The notes beneath the pieces are model-generated. The model saw nothing but the letters and a program-made list of their open reading frames with translations, ran no database searches and was not told where the DNA came from. A stretch of DNA of 64,000 nucleotides, taken from the IMG/VR virus record IMGVR_UViG_3300028920_000001, positions 248,001 through 312,000 of that record, one strand, 5' to 3'. Positions within the stretch are counted from its first letter, which is position 1; each line of letters opens with the position of its first letter. Shown here piece by piece: positions 31,278-42,853 of the stretch. The translations under genes and the position numbers were made by a program.

Positions 31278-32738
31278 GTGTCAGCTAAGCTTGACCTGAA
31301 ATATCGTCCTCAAAAGTTCGCTGAAGTTTTAGGTAATGAAGGAGTTAAGCAACTTCTTCTAGTTCGAAGTAAAAAAGGCGAATTTACTAACCAATCAATG
31401 ATGTTTAGTGGCCCAAAAGGCTGTGGGAAAACATCATTAGCCAGATTAGTAGCTCGTTCGATTGTATGCACTGCGCGGGTGGAAGGCGAACCGTGTAATG
31501 AATGCATGGCTTGTAAGTCTGTACTGGAAGAGACTTCAACTAGTGTGGAGGAGCTTGATGCTGCATCTCAAGGAACAGTAGACAAAATTCGATCTATGGT
31601 AAGAGATATTGAATACGAGCCTTTGGATGGAGCTGAAACTAGTATTTATATAGTAGACGAAGCTCAGCGATTATCTAAAGCTGCACAGGACGCTTTTCTT
31701 AGAGCCATTGAGAATCGACAATTTATAGTCATATTTTGTACCACTGAACCGCATAAAATTCAAGGTCCGATTAGAGACAGACTCGAGGAGTACCCGATTC
31801 GTCCTCCAACTGAAGACGAATTAGTTCACCGAATGACTGAGATTTGTCAAAAGGAACAAATTCAAGCTTCAGATGAGGTTTTACACTTAATAGCTCAAAT
31901 TCATGGTAATACTCCGCGTTCGAGTTTTTTAGCTATTGACTCTCTTTCAGATCTTGGTGAAATTACTGTCGAAAATGCCAAAAAGCTGTTCAGATTTGAC
32001 AGTTACAAATTAACGGATTTAGTGCTTACTTTAGTAGATTCCGATCCAGTTAAAGCATTTGAGTATCTCGATATGTTATCTAATCTTGAAAGTTCTACTT
32101 GGATTCGTGACGCTATCGTATTGGCAGTTTCTAGTGCATTTCGTGAGAGTATTGGAGCTAAATCTACGTATTTAGTCCCTACTCATTTTTTCTCTATTCG
32201 ACAACGAAATTGGATTAAATTAGCTCAGAAGATTGGTGGGATAGATCGACCTTCCATAGCTGACATCGAAGCAGCGTTATTGGTGGATAGTCAGGCTGTT
32301 CCTGAATCTGAGTTTAATACTGAACTTTTTTCAAATCCTAAAATGTCGTCGGCCAAATCTGTTGACGGTCAGGCGTTGGAAGTCGAAATGACAACAGTGT
32401 CTGAGTCTGCTGATCATCCTTTACGAAATTCTCTTTCTGAACTTCAAGAAGCACGTACTGAAAACTTGTCAAATTATATGAACAAGCCTGTTCTGAATTT
32501 GCCTCCGATAGAATCAACATCAACCGAACCGAAGTCTAAGGAAGCTAAACCTGTAAAATCGATAGAAGTGGAGGGAGTTAGATTTTCATCTACTGAGAGT
32601 TTAACTTCTTTGGATGATAAAATAGAAAAGTCGGAATTGAAGAAAGATATTAAACGTGATTTACTTGAGGTAGAGTTAGATAAATCACGTGTCCCAGTTA
32701 CCTCCAAAGAGTTCTCCAAACTCCTCAAAGATATTTAA
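31278..32738 (+). CDS. dnaX: DNA polymerase III gamma/tau subunit
   Basis: KYRPQKFAEVLG, GPKGCGKTSLAR, PCNECMAC, ELDAAS, IVDEAQRLS, CTTEPHKI. Confidence 0.93.
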   Translation: MSAKLDLKYRPQKFAEVLGNEGVKQLLLVRSKKGEFTNQSMMFSGPKGCGKTSLARLVARSIVCTARVEGEPCNECMACKSVLEETSTSVEELDAASQGTVDKIRSMVRDIEYEPLDGAETSIYIVDEAQRLSKAAQDAFLRAIENRQFIVIFCTTEPHKIQGPIRDRLEEYPIRPPTEDELVHRMTEICQKEQIQASDEVLHLIAQIHGNTPRSSFLAIDSLSDLGEITVENAKKLFRFDSYKLTDLVLTLVDSDPVKAFEYLDMLSNLESSTWIRDAIVLAVSSAFRESIGAKSTYLVPTHFFSIRQRNWIKLAQKIGGIDRPSIADIEAALLVDSQAVPESEFNTELFSNPKMSSAKSVDGQALEVEMTTVSESADHPLRNSLSELQEARTENLSNYMNKPVLNLPPIESTSTEPKSKEAKPVKSIEVEGVRFSSTESLTSLDDKIEKSELKKDIKRDLLEVELDKSRVPVTSKEFSKLLKDI

Positions 32739-33243
32739 GTGGGTAATAGTAGAATTAACTTCAACTGGAGAAAAGGAAGAAAATATTCAAAGTATTATTC
32801 AATCTGCTCATAAATTATTGAAAAAACCTGACTTGGCAGTATTTGTTCCTGCTATTTCCCAGACAGTTCGTGATGATTCTCAAACAATGTTTTATATGAA
32901 TGGATATGTATTTATAGAATACATGCTAGGTGTGAATTATCTAAGATTGAGAGAGACTACTTATTTTAGGGATGTTCTTTGTTCTTCTTATAATAATAAC
33001 GAACCTCAATATTCTTTGCTTGATGATTCGGAATTAGATTCTATTCGAAGGGGAATGGATGATCTTAAAGTAGGGGAGTATAAGGAGGGGGACGCAGTTT
33101 TAGTAAAAGAGGGATGTTATCGTAATCTTCCTGGTGTAGTTTCTTTAGTATATGAAGATAAACAAAATATCCAAGTAGCGGTGAATCTCTTGTCTAAGAG
33201 GATGCTGATCGATTTTCCAGTTACTTACGTAGAGAAGGTATGA
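32689..33243 (+). CDS. nusG: NusG-family transcription factor
   Basis: NGN domain (WVIV..VFVP..YMNGYVFI) and KOW (GDAVLVKEGCYRNLPGVV). Confidence 0.8.
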   Translation: MSQLPPKSSPNSSKIFKWVIVELTSTGEKEENIQSIIQSAHKLLKKPDLAVFVPAISQTVRDDSQTMFYMNGYVFIEYMLGVNYLRLRETTYFRDVLCSSYNNNEPQYSLLDDSELDSIRRGMDDLKVGEYKEGDAVLVKEGCYRNLPGVVSLVYEDKQNIQVAVNLLSKRMLIDFPVTYVEKV

Positions 33244-34220
33244 TAAATAGGAATATTTTGATTGACGGCAACAATTTATTGCATCGCATTTATTATGCTT
33301 TGGTCAAAGATAAAGAACCACTTACTTCTCATTCCGGTTATCCCACTGGTCTCATTTTTGGTGTTTTTCATACTATTTCTGACTGGATCGGGGATATATC
33401 AGATCCAACTCGGATGGAATTCTTTTTAGATGGTGTTCCAAAACGCCGATTGGATATCGATCCTCAGTATAAATTCAAAGAAGATTCCATTCAACCTGGT
33501 AAAGATCCATGTCCTATTAAGTTATCTGATGGATTTGAAGCAAAAAATGAAGTCGAAGTTATTGCTCATTTGTTTCAATTATTAGGAGCTGATCTTTACT
33601 ATCATAAAGAGGAAGAAGCGGATGATTTAATTGCATCTTACATTAAACGACATGAGAATGATGTTAATATCATAATATCTAATGATAAAGATTTTTATCA
33701 GCTATTAGCTGATAATCCAAGAGTTATTATTTATAAACCAGGTGTTAGTGGGGATCGATTTTTTGATGCTGAGCGGGCGGAAGAAGATCTGTTTAAAAAA
33801 TTCAAAGTGAGAATACCTCCGGCTAATGTCAGAATGTTTAAGGCTTTGACTGGAGACCCGTCTGATAATATTACAGGAATTCCTAGGCTTAGGAAAAGGG
33901 TAGCTGCTCCATTATGCGAATGTAAAAGCGTAGATGAACTGTATGAGACTGGCCTTCCAGGGCTGTCTAAAGCTGAACGTGAAAAGGCTATTTCACTTAA
34001 GGAAAAAATTGCAACTAATTTTGAATTAGTTGCATTGCATGATGATCTAGATATTGAAATTATACGTAATCGAATTGAGTCTGATTTTGAAATGGCATCT
34101 AAGATTTTCAAGGAAGATTTAAATATTAATTCCGTTTATCCTTATACATTTGAATTTAAATCGAAGGGAACATTCCGAACGTCTTTTTGTGGCGTTGCTG
34201 ATTTCCTTCAGGATATTTAA
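33240..34220 (+). CDS. 5'-3' exonuclease / flap endonuclease (PolA N-terminal-like)
   Basis: LIDGNNLLHR, EADDLIAS, ISNDKDFYQL, ALTGDPSDNITGI. Confidence 0.92.
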   Translation: MINRNILIDGNNLLHRIYYALVKDKEPLTSHSGYPTGLIFGVFHTISDWIGDISDPTRMEFFLDGVPKRRLDIDPQYKFKEDSIQPGKDPCPIKLSDGFEAKNEVEVIAHLFQLLGADLYYHKEEEADDLIASYIKRHENDVNIIISNDKDFYQLLADNPRVIIYKPGVSGDRFFDAERAEEDLFKKFKVRIPPANVRMFKALTGDPSDNITGIPRLRKRVAAPLCECKSVDELYETGLPGLSKAEREKAISLKEKIATNFELVALHDDLDIEIIRNRIESDFEMASKIFKEDLNINSVYPYTFEFKSKGTFRTSFCGVADFLQDI

Positions 34221-34245
34221 AAACTTTCAACATTGCTATTATCGG

Positions 34246-34366
34246 TAAAGTATTTATGGTTGCTTATGCAACCTCGGTCGATATCATACCTAATATAAAA
34301 CAGACCTCGATATTATAATGATACCTACACAACCACGACACATATTGTGTCCGACCGAGGTTGCCA
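34246..34366 (+). promoter_or_regulatory. Structured 5' leader with SD-occluding stem
   Basis: -10 TAAAGT at 34246; perfect 13-bp inverted repeat 34268-34280 / 34352-34364 covers the GAGG SD. Confidence 0.6.
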
Positions 34367-35146
34367 ATGACGTCTTCTCATGTTTTGATCCAAGATCCGA
34401 ATGATATTTCTGCACGATATAGTAATGATGATAGATTAGGTTTTGATGGGGAAGATGATTTTGATGATTTTGATGGTTTAGATGAACATATTGAAGATCA
34501 GTTAGCTCCAGCAATCCCTGATGAAGTTTCTACTAAGAAATTAGCTTTTGAGGCGATTGAGCGATTTTTATACAGGATTCCGCCTCGAGAAGCGGATTTA
34601 ATTACTTTATATTATAAGAATCATTTAAAGCAAGAACAAATAGCTAAATTATTCAATATTACTCAGGCTGCAGTTTCCTATCGTCTTCATCGTGGAATTA
34701 AGAGAATTCAATTCCTTCGAACAATTCCTGAATTAGAGCGTGATACTTTTGAGCTCGAGCTCGGACCTAAGTTTTCTGATCAAGATCGGGAAATTTTGTG
34801 GCGGATGTATAAAACGACATGTCAGTCTGCAATAGCTAAGCAGATGGGACTAACCCAAGGTCGCGTTCGTCATCGTTTCTTTAGGTCATTGAGTCGAATT
34901 AAGGAATTGATTGCTGATGAAGCCAAAGAAACTCAGATTGGTCTTAGAATGGAACAAAGAAAGGGAGTTAACATTACAGATGAAGAGATTCAAATAGAGG
35001 TGAATGAAACTATTAATAATTGTAAATATTCTAAATATTGGACTGTTTTTTTTGCAATTTCAGACAAATACTTCAATATCTTACATGAAGTTAGCCTACC
35101 GCAATTTCAAAATAGGGGCGACGCTCAGATTTTATCGGGTGGATAG
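34367..35146 (+). CDS. Regulator with tandem sigma-70 region-4 HTHs
   Basis: IPPREADLITLYY..LKQEQIAKLFNITQAAVSYRLHRG and FSDQDREIL..QSAIAKQMGLTQGRVRHRFFR; no region 2. Confidence 0.75.
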   Translation: MTSSHVLIQDPNDISARYSNDDRLGFDGEDDFDDFDGLDEHIEDQLAPAIPDEVSTKKLAFEAIERFLYRIPPREADLITLYYKNHLKQEQIAKLFNITQAAVSYRLHRGIKRIQFLRTIPELERDTFELELGPKFSDQDREILWRMYKTTCQSAIAKQMGLTQGRVRHRFFRSLSRIKELIADEAKETQIGLRMEQRKGVNITDEEIQIEVNETINNCKYSKYWTVFFAISDKYFNILHEVSLPQFQNRGDAQILSGG

Positions 35147-35180: not shown

Positions 35181-36827
35181 GTGGATATCTTACAAAATTT
35201 GTTGGATCGAGGTATTGAGTCTAGTAATCTTAATACTGAAAAGACTTTAAAACATTTAGTCAAATTCGGACTAAACTCTAAGTCCGAAGTATATGCTGTT
35301 TGTAAATGTGGTAACGAAAGATTAATTAAATTAGCTTCTATTTTGAGAGTTATTAAACGAACTGGTTCATATCAATGTAATTCATGTGCTGTCAAAAATA
35401 AATGGGATGACCCATCTTATGCTCAGAGGCATAAGGACGGTGTTTCCAATTCATGGACAAAATCTAAAAGACAGAAACAATCTGTTATTTCCAGAGATTT
35501 ATGGTCCGATAGTAAATTTCGGGAGAAACAGCGGACTCTATCTATTGAATTATGGGACGATAAAGATAAAAGAGAAGAAGCTTCGAAATTTGCTAAGAAT
35601 TTATGGAGGAATTTAGAATATAGAAAACGTCATGAAGAAGTATGGGCTGATTCTAAATATAAAGCTGATAATTCTGAAAGAATAAAGAAAGTCTGGCAAA
35701 GGTCTGATTACAAAGAAAAATTTGAAAAACTGTGGGCTGATTCAGATTTCAAAAAGAAATTGTCTAAATGTGCTAAGCTTCTTTGGGAAAGTGAGGAGTA
35801 TAGACAGAAAGTAGTTATTGCACAGCGTAGACTTTGGGAGAATCAAAAATATAGAGAAAGGATGGCTAATATTAGAGCATCTCATTCTGGGAAAGATTCG
35901 ATTCTAGAACGAGTTACTCAGCAATTACTTAATCTTTTGAATGTGGAATATAATAAACATTATGTGATTGGTCCTTATGAATTTGATCTATTTGTTCAGT
36001 CTTATGATTTGCTGATTGAGTGTCAAGGAGAGTATTGGCATTCTCTAGATAAAGCAAAGAAAAATGATGCTGTAAAATCTACATATATAGATGAATATTT
36101 TCCTCAATTACAATTACTTTATCTATATGAAAGGGATTTTCTTAATCCTGAGATTGTTAAACAAAAGTTAGCTAAGGCTATTTATGGAGAAAATACTGAG
36201 GTTACTGAAATTGATTTCTTATTTTCCGATATTCAGATTCAAAAATTAGATATGAAGAAAAAGTTAAAGGATTCTTTTTATTCAGAGCCTGAAGAATTTC
36301 TTCAATCATTTCATTATGCGGGCTTTGGAAGATCAGCTAAAGTAATTTACGGGGCTTATTTAGGTGATAAGTTAACTGCGATTTGCAAGTTTGCAGGAGT
36401 GGTAAGAAAAGAAGTAGCTACGTCTATGAAATTAAAGCCATCAGAGGTCTTAGAATTAGATAGGTTTTGCATTCATCCCGAATATCAAAAGAAGAATTTC
36501 GCCTCTTGGTTTATTTCTCGTTGTTCTAAATTAGTATTTGAGGAATTTTCGAAGTTAAAGTATTTAGTTTCTTTTGCTGATACTACCTACGAACATTTTG
36601 GAACGATTTATAAAGCTGCTAATTGGCAAGAATTCCATAGAACTAGACCTAGTTATCATTATATGTCTGATGATGGTTTCATCATGCATAAGAAGACATT
36701 ATATGGACATGCTCGTTCAATGAAAAAGACTGAAAGAGAATACGCCAAAGAATTTGGATATACCAGGATCTATGGGAAGGAAAAAATTAAATTTATTTAT
36801 CCTAAGCTAATTTCAGCTTCTTGTTAA
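35181..36827 (+). CDS. Vsr/DUF559-like endonuclease fused to a Mom-like GNAT domain
   Basis: Trp-periodic helical repeats; YEFDLF..LIECQGEYWH; LELDRFC, LVSFADT, GTIYKAANW. Confidence 0.75.
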   Translation: MDILQNLLDRGIESSNLNTEKTLKHLVKFGLNSKSEVYAVCKCGNERLIKLASILRVIKRTGSYQCNSCAVKNKWDDPSYAQRHKDGVSNSWTKSKRQKQSVISRDLWSDSKFREKQRTLSIELWDDKDKREEASKFAKNLWRNLEYRKRHEEVWADSKYKADNSERIKKVWQRSDYKEKFEKLWADSDFKKKLSKCAKLLWESEEYRQKVVIAQRRLWENQKYRERMANIRASHSGKDSILERVTQQLLNLLNVEYNKHYVIGPYEFDLFVQSYDLLIECQGEYWHSLDKAKKNDAVKSTYIDEYFPQLQLLYLYERDFLNPEIVKQKLAKAIYGENTEVTEIDFLFSDIQIQKLDMKKKLKDSFYSEPEEFLQSFHYAGFGRSAKVIYGAYLGDKLTAICKFAGVVRKEVATSMKLKPSEVLELDRFCIHPEYQKKNFASWFISRCSKLVFEEFSKLKYLVSFADTTYEHFGTIYKAANWQEFHRTRPSYHYMSDDGFIMHKKTLYGHARSMKKTEREYAKEFGYTRIYGKEKIKFIYPKLISASC

Positions 36828-36842
36828 CTTTCAAAATCGAAT

Positions 36843-37754
36843 ATGGCTAATCCTGTTGTTGCCGGCGGCTGCTATGGGTTCAATATTGAATCTATAGGCG
36901 GAACTTGGAGTTGGAATGTTCATGCTGATAACACTCAGGGTCTAGGTCAGTTATTTAAGGTTCAGGATATCAATACCCCATATGGATCTCTTTATACTGC
37001 CATGATCCCTATTCCTGGGGACGTTGTTTTAGCAATGGCAGATTCGTTATCCGATGTTCAAGATCAGTTAGCTCCAATGTTGTCTTTAACGCAAGGAAGC
37101 GTTTCGTCTTTCAATATTGTAATTACTGAAGGCGATTCAAATGTTGACATCGGAACTATCGGTATTCAAAATGTGGGTGCTTTCGGTTCATTTATGGTAG
37201 CCACGGCTACTCCTACAGTTTCCTGGCTTCAGACCAATCCTAGTTACATAAGCGATTTAGGTAAGAATGGTACTGGCAATTTTGGTTTTACGTTATTGAC
37301 TGGTGCACTTTTAAATGCTAATTCTCCTTATACGGGAATAGTGAATTTGCAGGACAATCGAAATGTCCCAACTACTATTCCAATTAGTTTTACGGTTACT
37401 GTAAATCCGCGTCCGGTAATTTCAGCAGTGCCGTTGTCATTGGCCTTTACCCATAGTTTATCACTGAACACTTCGAGTGGTGCTCAGCAAGTTGAAATTG
37501 AGAATGTAGGACCGGCATCTTCTGTATTAAATGTTAGTTTGGTCCGAGTAAATAACAACTCGAGTTGGATTGATTTCACTCCGACTGCTGCTGGACCTTT
37601 AAATTCTGGAGATTCTACTCTTATTACTTTTAGTGTTGTTAAAGCTAATGTTCCATTATCTCCTGGAGTTTATCAAGATACTATTCGGATTTCTTCTCCT
37701 AATGCCGCTAACTCGCCAGTTGATGTCACAGTAACATTGACCGTTAGTGCATAA
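36843..37754 (+). CDS. Virion protein with Ig/BACON-like beta domains
   Basis: S/T/V/N-rich; WL/WI..P..G.L..G, G.Y...I.I...NA.NSP..V.VTLTV. Confidence 0.7.
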   Translation: MANPVVAGGCYGFNIESIGGTWSWNVHADNTQGLGQLFKVQDINTPYGSLYTAMIPIPGDVVLAMADSLSDVQDQLAPMLSLTQGSVSSFNIVITEGDSNVDIGTIGIQNVGAFGSFMVATATPTVSWLQTNPSYISDLGKNGTGNFGFTLLTGALLNANSPYTGIVNLQDNRNVPTTIPISFTVTVNPRPVISAVPLSLAFTHSLSLNTSSGAQQVEIENVGPASSVLNVSLVRVNNNSSWIDFTPTAAGPLNSGDSTLITFSVVKANVPLSPGVYQDTIRISSPNAANSPVDVTVTLTVSA

Positions 37755-42210: not shown

Positions 42211-42247
42211 TTAAATATTAATTAAATATTTTAGGTAGGGTTAGAGT

Positions 42248-42853
42248 ATGGATGATGGCCCTACCGATGATCAGGATAAGGGTAACGGCGACGGCAAAGG
42301 GAAATTAATAACTTTCCCTGGTGGTAAGAAAGTTGACCCTGAAGAAGTTGGCCTGGATAGTATAGTAGGCCAAACTGGGGATATTCCTACTCCAGATATT
42401 TTAGATCCAGTGTACTTAGATAAAGAATTGCGGGAGCGAGTTGAATATGTAAAGAAACAGGCTCTAGTTCAGGCTATCACTGAAAAAAAGAGTACTATTG
42501 ACACTATCGATGCTGTTTTGGTTGAAATAGCGGAAGAATTAGCTCATCTTAAATTTGAAAGAAGAAAAGCTGCTAAAGAAGGTAAAAATACTGCGAGCTA
42601 TACCATTGGTAGAATAGGTTCTCTGACTAAATTAGCTGATTTATTATTGAAGAAGAAAGAATCTATGATGCAAGAGGAACTGGACCTGAAATCGTCCAGA
42701 TTCCAGGCAGTTTTTAGAGTTTGGATGGAATTTTTCCATGATTCGATGGAAAAATCTGGTATTTCTCCAGAAGTAATTGATGTTATATTTCAACAGATGA
42801 AAGCTGATATGGTTGATTGGGAAAGAAAAATGTCTACTGCCGGTATTGAATAA
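42248..42853 (+). CDS. Candidate terminase small subunit
   Basis: Helical 201-aa protein coupled (TAATG) to terL; positional inference only. Confidence 0.4.
   Translation: MDDGPTDDQDKGNGDGKGKLITFPGGKKVDPEEVGLDSIVGQTGDIPTPDILDPVYLDKELRERVEYVKKQALVQAITEKKSTIDTIDAVLVEIAEELAHLKFERRKAAKEGKNTASYTIGRIGSLTKLADLLLKKKESMMQEELDLKSSRFQAVFRVWMEFFHDSMEKSGISPEVIDVIFQQMKADMVDWERKMSTAGIE

Follow-up and report, generated by a model that had tools for sequence, protein, structure and literature searches.

A conserved leader, previously uncatalogued and absent from Rfam, precedes the gene for a regulator-like protein with two helix-turn-helix (HTH) domains in a group of ~400-kb phages; it buries the ribosome-binding site of that gene in a long-range helix and carries two rows of AUAC-like repeats spaced six bases apart, so that it most likely controls translation through an RNA-binding factor whose existence is inferred from sequence alone. 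The leader was examined in a 64,000-nucleotide stretch (the window; bases 248001-312000) of a 426,960-bp IMG/VR virus record with direct terminal repeats and 40% GC (the whole record is referred to below as G000). A search of sequencing runs for this DNA found only DNA runs, from marine sediment, and no RNA run. A blastn search against phage GenBank records found no match.

Results

Structure and stability of the leader

To determine whether the features proposed by an earlier sequence-only reading are present, we located each of them in the window (Table 1). That reading had described a -10-like TAAAGT element, a hairpin competing with a perfect 13-bp stem that buries the GAGG Shine-Dalgarno (SD) sequence, a second hairpin and a TATAAT within the loop, and a downstream protein with two sigma4 HTH domains and no sigma2 domain. 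The observation was correct in every element. RNAfold placed the 13-bp helix (P2) in the minimum-energy structure (-40.4 kcal/mol, compared with -25.6 ± 3.2 kcal/mol for 200 dinucleotide shuffles; z = -4.62), and none of the shuffles was as good. P2 is the longest perfect long-range stem over any SD region in the genome, and it has the best SD-to-upstream duplex energy of 297 candidate starts (-28.7 kcal/mol against a mean of -13.7, sd 4.1). Forcing the SD arm open was calculated to cost 19.7 kcal/mol in the window and a median of 16.9 kcal/mol across leaders.

Table 1. Positions of the leader, its parts and associated features (window numbering unless G000 is given)
Position	Strand	Feature	Remarks
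34244-34366	+	Leader of the tandem-sigma4 gene	Starts 23 nt after the exonuclease stop codon
34244-34251	+	GGTAAAGT, copy of the GGTAnnGT motif	Contains TAAAGT (34246-34251); probably a -10-type promoter element (TAnnGT) without a -35
34258-34273	+	P1, 5'-proximal hairpin ggttgc/gcaacc	3' strand overlaps 6 nt of the anti-SD arm
34268-34280	+	P2 5' arm (anti-SD), gcaacctcggtcg	Perfect 13-nt complement of 34352-34364
34281-34305	+	Repeat array A: ATAT c ATAC ct.ATAT a AAAC AGAC	Degenerate in this AT-rich genome; position matches array A of relatives (consensus AnACnnATACnnATACnnAnAC)
34310-34336	+	Repeat array B: ATAT t ATAA tg ATAC ct ACAC aa CCAC	Period 6 from 34315; contains TATAAT (34314-34319) at the junction of units ATAT t and ATAA tg; relatives have ATACnnATACnnATACnnAnAC at this position
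34337-34351	+	P4 hairpin gacaca-tat-tgtgtc	Directly next to the P2 3' arm
34352-34364	+	P2 3' arm, cgaccgaggttgc	Contains SD GAGG (34357-34360), 6 nt before the ATG at 34367
34367-35146	+	Gene for the tandem-sigma4 protein, 259 aa	Two sigma4-like HTH domains, no sigma2 domain, helical C-terminal part, conserved disordered tail
35099-35143		C-terminal tail (residues 245-259)	Predicted disordered (pLDDT below 50); nearly invariant P-Q-F-x-x-R-G-D-A-Q-I
32689-33243	+	NusG-like gene (NGN plus KOW-like)	47% identical to the copy in related locus L004
33240-34220	+	5'-3' exonuclease gene
35181-36827	+	548-aa ORF	HNH/homing-endonuclease-like PHROG hits; C-terminal Mom-like domain (Pfam Mom, E 1.9e-20)
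36843-37754		Next conserved gene	48% identical to L004:4336-5247
42234-42250		GGTAnnGT 6-7 nt before an ATG (for example GGTAGGGTtagagtATG)	Also at G000 341864 and 393700
G000:C1:362907-363015		Second leader of the same class (L053:1501-1609)	Covariance-model hit at 362907-363006
G000:C1:~327400-327520		Terminator-like hairpin, T-tract, AGTAAGGT, about 10 nt, ATACggATAT, ATG	Precedes a small conserved gene (…DIYLAAY…AGC…)
G000:C1:44101-44757 and 65934-66590	+ and -	219-aa sigma2-only protein and full sigma factor (sigma2 plus sigma4)

The downstream protein and its neighbours

Pfam searches of the 259-aa ORF found Sigma70_r4 (and r4_2) matches in two stretches (about residues 62-114 and 138-180) and no region 2, and a scan of the genome with PF04542 hit two other genes but not this one, so the protein does not qualify as a sigma-70 family sigma factor. 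PHROG hits were to sigma-factor families, and a profile of 35 orthologues hit SigF region 4 in PDB. An AlphaFold model (pLDDT 79.8) was all-helical, and Foldseek searches with it matched only single sigma4 domains, with no full-length analogue in PDB or BFVD. At least 368 homologue clusters exist, all about 250-295 aa and 60-70% identical, on contigs up to 445 kb, and they carry only automatic "sigma24" names. The predicted disordered tail, with its nearly invariant residues, looks like a short linear docking motif for a partner that is not identified. The genome also encodes a sigma2-only protein and a full sigma factor, which, together with the sigma4-only tandem protein, hints at split or modular sigma functions next to clamp-loader and exonuclease genes, as in T4 late transcription.

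The order NusG-like gene, exonuclease gene, leader and sigma4 gene is kept in relatives, and a clamp-loader-like gene also lies further upstream in the window. Downstream, the 548-aa ORF lies between the sigma4 gene and the next conserved gene; because L004 has no ORF of 80 aa or more at this position, it looks like a mobile insertion.

Conservation and covariation

To assess whether the leader is conserved, 41 related loci were retrieved and compared. The same leader lies before the orthologous tandem-sigma4 gene in more than 30 related megaphage contigs; two loci that had appeared negative (L029 and L036) carry reduced versions of it. The sequences have diverged strongly but share one plan: a near-invariant GGTAnnGT motif, a 5' hairpin, an anti-SD arm containing CUCC, array A of 3-4 A[U/G]AC units, a variable central hairpin that is missing in the window, array B of 3-4 units followed by an A(A/G)ACUnCCGC-like motif, a hairpin next to the 3' arm, the 3' arm with GGAG, and the AUG 5-8 nt later. 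SD-region nucleotides were in predicted long-range pairs in 32 of 33 leaders, and a hairpin of at least 4 bp ended within 6 nt of the 3' arm in 21 of 30 leaders, with different sequences.

RNAalifold on the raw MAFFT alignment gave no structure, and the helix was therefore specified by hand on columns anchored by sequence and not by structure. On this alignment the 12 columns of the closing helix were 72.9% paired, as opposed to 32-49% when the 3' partners were slid by 1-3 columns; 10 of 12 pairs carried changes on both sides (47 cells), and none of 500 column shuffles reached the observed covariation score. A covariance model (R1) built from this alignment found the leader at E < 1e-4 in 33 distinct loci, although its E-values are rough, and after realignment the helix was 77.3% paired (overall, 73-77% of cells paired against 30-49% for slid partners). 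Part of the P2 complementarity is forced by conservation of CUCC and GGAG, the innermost pairs being constrained by the SD itself, so that the informative covariation is in the flanking pairs; furthermore, part of the alignment evidence comes from related sequences and may overcount inherited changes. Searches against Rfam returned nothing relevant at E <= 10 in the window region or at E <= 1 in nine relatives.

To determine whether the leader could act by attenuation, we looked for a terminator and a leader peptide. No U-tract follows the helix, the 3' arm being followed by ccaATG, no terminator was called in the leader, and a uORF occurred in only 6 of 31 leaders, these being unrelated; leader-peptide attenuation was rejected on this basis, and the absence of a U-tract and of a conserved uORF points to control at translation rather than by attenuation. 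Pairing of GGUAGU with the downstream ACUACC motif as a pseudoknot was likewise rejected, because by eye the downstream motif does not change with the variable positions of GGTAnnGT.

Periodic AKAC arrays

The most distinctive feature, missed by the sequence-only reading, is the hexamer-periodic arrays. The 31 non-redundant leaders held 5.3 AKAC motifs each compared with 1.16 in shuffles, and 70 of 133 successive spacings were exactly 6 nt compared with 0.23 expected. The unit is A, U (76%) or G (24%), A, C, then two free bases. Triple units occurred 32 times in the leaders and never in the other 218 kb of the fetched loci on either strand, whereas the reversed-pattern control gave 1 hit. The arrays are predicted to be mostly unpaired. 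In the window itself the repeats are degenerate, with only 3 canonical AKAC units. Repeated k-mers of the window leader elsewhere in G000 showed no family, and a strict AKAY-array pattern was not enriched in G000 (19 hits against 6-21 in shuffles). An IMG/VR-wide scan for three ATACnn units followed by AKAC returned mostly hexanucleotide microsatellites and coding repeats and was uninformative, although many small phage contigs unrelated to the window (L093, L110, L118, L123, L126, L143 and others) were found to carry (GATACA)4-7 tracts preceded by repeated GTAACG- or AACGC-like words, a different and unexplained repeat element.

Other occurrences of the element

R1 found one strong copy per complete genome. 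Its next-best hits lay directly upstream of a second conserved gene with the N-terminus MxIGPFTTYAPPGVY, in G000 (E 1.7 genome-wide), in the relative's genome G005 (E 6.7e-5) and in seven of ten other contigs. In G000 this large gene (MTIGPFTTYAPPGVY...) has the second-best long-range SD duplex in the genome (-27.3 kcal/mol), in which AGCUCUCUAU is predicted to pair with AUAGGGAGCU over the SD. Its relatives show AKAC arrays, a conserved AUAUuuAGACUUCUGCUC stretch before the SD and a conserved GGCTCTCTATG motif at the 5' side, which could be another promoter type. The protein has no PHROG hit and only a weak DUF2460 hit, and ESM Atlas hints at sheath or DUF3383 families at scores below 0.9, so that a tail-sheath-like identity is a lead only.

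In full genomes of relatives the strict triple unit occurred a few more times. All but one of these hits, a perfect AGACGA tandem repeat in G003, were on the same strand of the record as the sigma4 gene, and most were immediately 5' of an AUG, including genes that lack an SD (in loci L049, L050 and L212). For the small …DIYLAAY… gene, the arrangement GTAnnGT, about 10 nt, AKAC array and AUG is kept in three distant genomes (G001, G005 and G000).

The GGTAnnGT motif

The G, T, A, G and T of the motif are invariant in 33 aligned leaders. Only a T-rich tract is conserved upstream, with no -35, and in many loci the upstream exonuclease stop codon lies 2-11 nt before the motif. No sigma70-type promoter, with a -35 and a -10 hexamer at 16-18 bp spacing, was predicted in 34220-34366, for either TAAAGT or TATAAT. 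The -10-like TAnnGT with GG upstream is conserved, so that a -10-only or phage-specific promoter remains possible for the former. In G000 the motif is depleted in coding DNA (27 sense and 15 antisense occurrences against 107 and 57 for permuted controls) and has the highest intergenic fraction of 60 controls. Several copies lie 5-7 nt before start codons, which suggests leaderless or near-leaderless mRNAs; in a relative (L068:13-30), GGTAAAGT lies 5 nt before the ATG of a GIY-YIG-like homing endonuclease gene. Another copy follows the terminator-like hairpin before the small conserved gene. We therefore favor a -10-only, possibly phage-factor-dependent, promoter with an inferred start near 34258, which would put P1 at the very 5' end of the mRNA.

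Discussion

We interpret the leader as a translational operator of the tandem-sigma4 gene, a reading to which we assign a probability of roughly 0.5. The analysis itself demonstrates the pairing of the SD with an upstream anti-SD arm, its covariation, the conservation of this helix together with the adjacent hairpin and the two arrays (predicted to be single-stranded) in more than 30 megaphages despite diverged primary sequence, the single strong copy per genome at this gene, the weaker relative before a second conserved gene and the bare AKAC arrays at the ribosome-binding site of a third. The remainder is inferred: that transcription starts about 7 nt after the GGTAnnGT motif, so that the whole structure, including the 5' arm, would be in the mRNA; that the closed helix, costing about 17-20 kcal/mol to open, keeps basal translation low; that expression responds to its opening; and that the arrays are the docking platform for a multimeric or multi-domain RNA-binding factor, phage- or host-encoded, whose binding would either lock or open the SD helix and so set when and how much of the regulator is made. 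The strict period and the base-specific conservation of A, K, A and C, with free spacers, across phages of 33-63% GC argue for specific pockets. One candidate factor is the tandem-HTH product itself, because the strongest copy sits on a nucleic-acid-binding protein's own mRNA, which makes autogenous feedback a reasonable sub-hypothesis. However, no candidate binding protein was found, since searches of G000 returned no S1, CsrA, Hfq or RegA homologue, and arrays placed where an SD would be in other genes fit a factor-independent ribosome-recruiting role equally well.

The main rival, less likely but not dismissed, is a ribosome standby or enhancer leader with no dedicated regulator, in which the unstructured arrays recruit 30S subunits, for example through ribosomal protein S1, and the waiting subunits capture the SD whenever P2 breathes, so that the leader would only tune a fixed translation level. 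The arrays before AUGs lacking an SD, their predicted single-stranded state and the absence of an obvious RNA-binding regulator among the families searched are consistent with this view. On the other hand, S1 is not known to need a specific tetramer at a strict 6-nt period, the base-specific conservation points to specific pockets, and so costly a helix is expensive if no regulation is intended.

A more doubtful alternative is that GGTAGnGT is not a promoter but an ops-like site on the non-template strand that would load the NusG/RfaH-like protein encoded two genes upstream, which, as with RfaH, would couple ribosomes to an mRNA whose SD is unavailable and which is read through from the upstream operon. 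The sequence GGTAGCGT, as in L023, L037 and L039, is identical to positions 4-11 of the ops element GGCGGTAGCGTG, of which G4, G5, A7 and G8 are essential for RfaH recruitment and T6 is the flipped-out base (PMC5995543); the NusG-like gene is syntenic, and the motif often lies close to the upstream stop codon. Among the leaders G4, G5, T6, A7, G10 and T11 are invariant or nearly so, but G8 is present in about 70% and is A in the window and several relatives, the flanks and G12 (of the T11-G12 pause signal) are not conserved, and a C3:G8-type pair is inconsistent. These points, together with the copies just before start codons, the copy after a terminator-like hairpin and the depletion on both strands of coding DNA, all fit a promoter better.

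An RNase III-type processing site is unlikely. P4 sits 0-3 nt from the 3' arm in most leaders, and the 13-bp P2 stacked coaxially on the 6-bp P4 could form a duplex of about 19 bp, compared with the roughly 20 bp or more of near-continuous duplex expected of such a site, whose cleavage would free the SD and activate translation, or would destabilize the mRNA, as in phage lambda N and T7 early mRNAs. The helix is long and conserved, but P2 alone, at 8-17 bp, is short for RNase III, and this reading does not explain the arrays.

The interpretation offered by the sequence-only reading, that mutually exclusive folds or two promoters gate translation, perhaps as a timing switch, was only partly supported: the SD-hiding leader of a tandem-sigma4 gene and the conserved -10-like element held, whereas the switch and the second promoter did not find support. 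A nascent 5' hairpin overlapped at least 4 nt of the 5' arm in only 21 of 32 leaders, was weak (-5 to -15 kcal/mol) relative to the cost of freeing the SD arm, and was absent in some relatives such as L022 and L008. TATAAT, which as an internal promoter would make a transcript that lacks the 5' arm, exists only in the window's closest relatives and is a degenerate part of array B, which occupies that position elsewhere. The arrays point to a trans-acting factor rather than self-switching, and a timing role rests on inference alone. A small-molecule riboswitch, although suggested by a conserved multi-helix leader with SD sequestration as expression platform, is the least likely reading given the lack of an Rfam match, conserved bases that are iterated tetramers in single-stranded arrays rather than a junction core, and a central hairpin that is variable and missing in the window.

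The closest parallels each differ in part. In the phage T4/RB69 RegA operators and the T4 gene 32 autoregulatory leader, translation is set by a protein binding iterated short motifs in an unstructured stretch near a structured element, and several genes, including the regulator's own, share the operator; here no RegA homologue was found in G000, the motif is A[U/G]AC at a strict 6-nt period in two arrays, and the SD is additionally locked in a long-range helix of 8-17 bp. The Bacillus TRAP (11 G/UAG triplets) and HutP (two sets of three UAG) targets are evenly spaced short repeats, in HutP's case two clusters separated by a spacer, read by a ring-shaped oligomer that changes leader folding, but those systems mainly control transcription attenuation through host-encoded proteins and use triplets spaced by 2-4 nt; the resemblance is one of arrangement, with no homologous motif or protein shown. 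In the MS2 coat gene and tisB a stable helix covers the SD and an upstream single-stranded region could hold 30S subunits, yet standby sites are not known to need a periodic, sequence-specific motif. With respect to the protein, sigma-70 family factors and the T4 late-transcription proteins gp55/gp33 offer a comparison in their sigma4-like domains and gene neighborhood, but the present protein lacks sigma2 and sigma3 domains and has two sigma4 copies in tandem.

A further possibility, speculative and improbable on present evidence but of considerable interest if true, is that the AKAC-array leader defines a clade-wide post-transcriptional regulon of megaphages covering the regulator gene, the possibly tail-sheath-like structural gene and further genes, read by a new kind of periodic-motif RNA-binding protein, possibly the tandem sigma4-like protein itself using its two HTH domains on the two arrays in autogenous feedback; that would be a sigma-derived protein working on RNA.

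Gene regulation in uncultivated phages of about 400 kb is almost unknown. The present analysis provides a covarying, clade-wide cis-regulatory RNA, its presence in the mRNA being inferred, with a simple anatomy of an SD lock plus two periodic repeat arrays, a link through the same element between a conserved regulator gene and a second conserved, possibly structural, gene, and a candidate promoter motif, GGTAnnGT. If a specific binding factor exists, it would be a new translational control system and a compact orthogonal part (operator plus repressor or activator) for synthetic biology; if no such factor exists, the arrays would be a new sequence-specific ribosome-recruiting signal.
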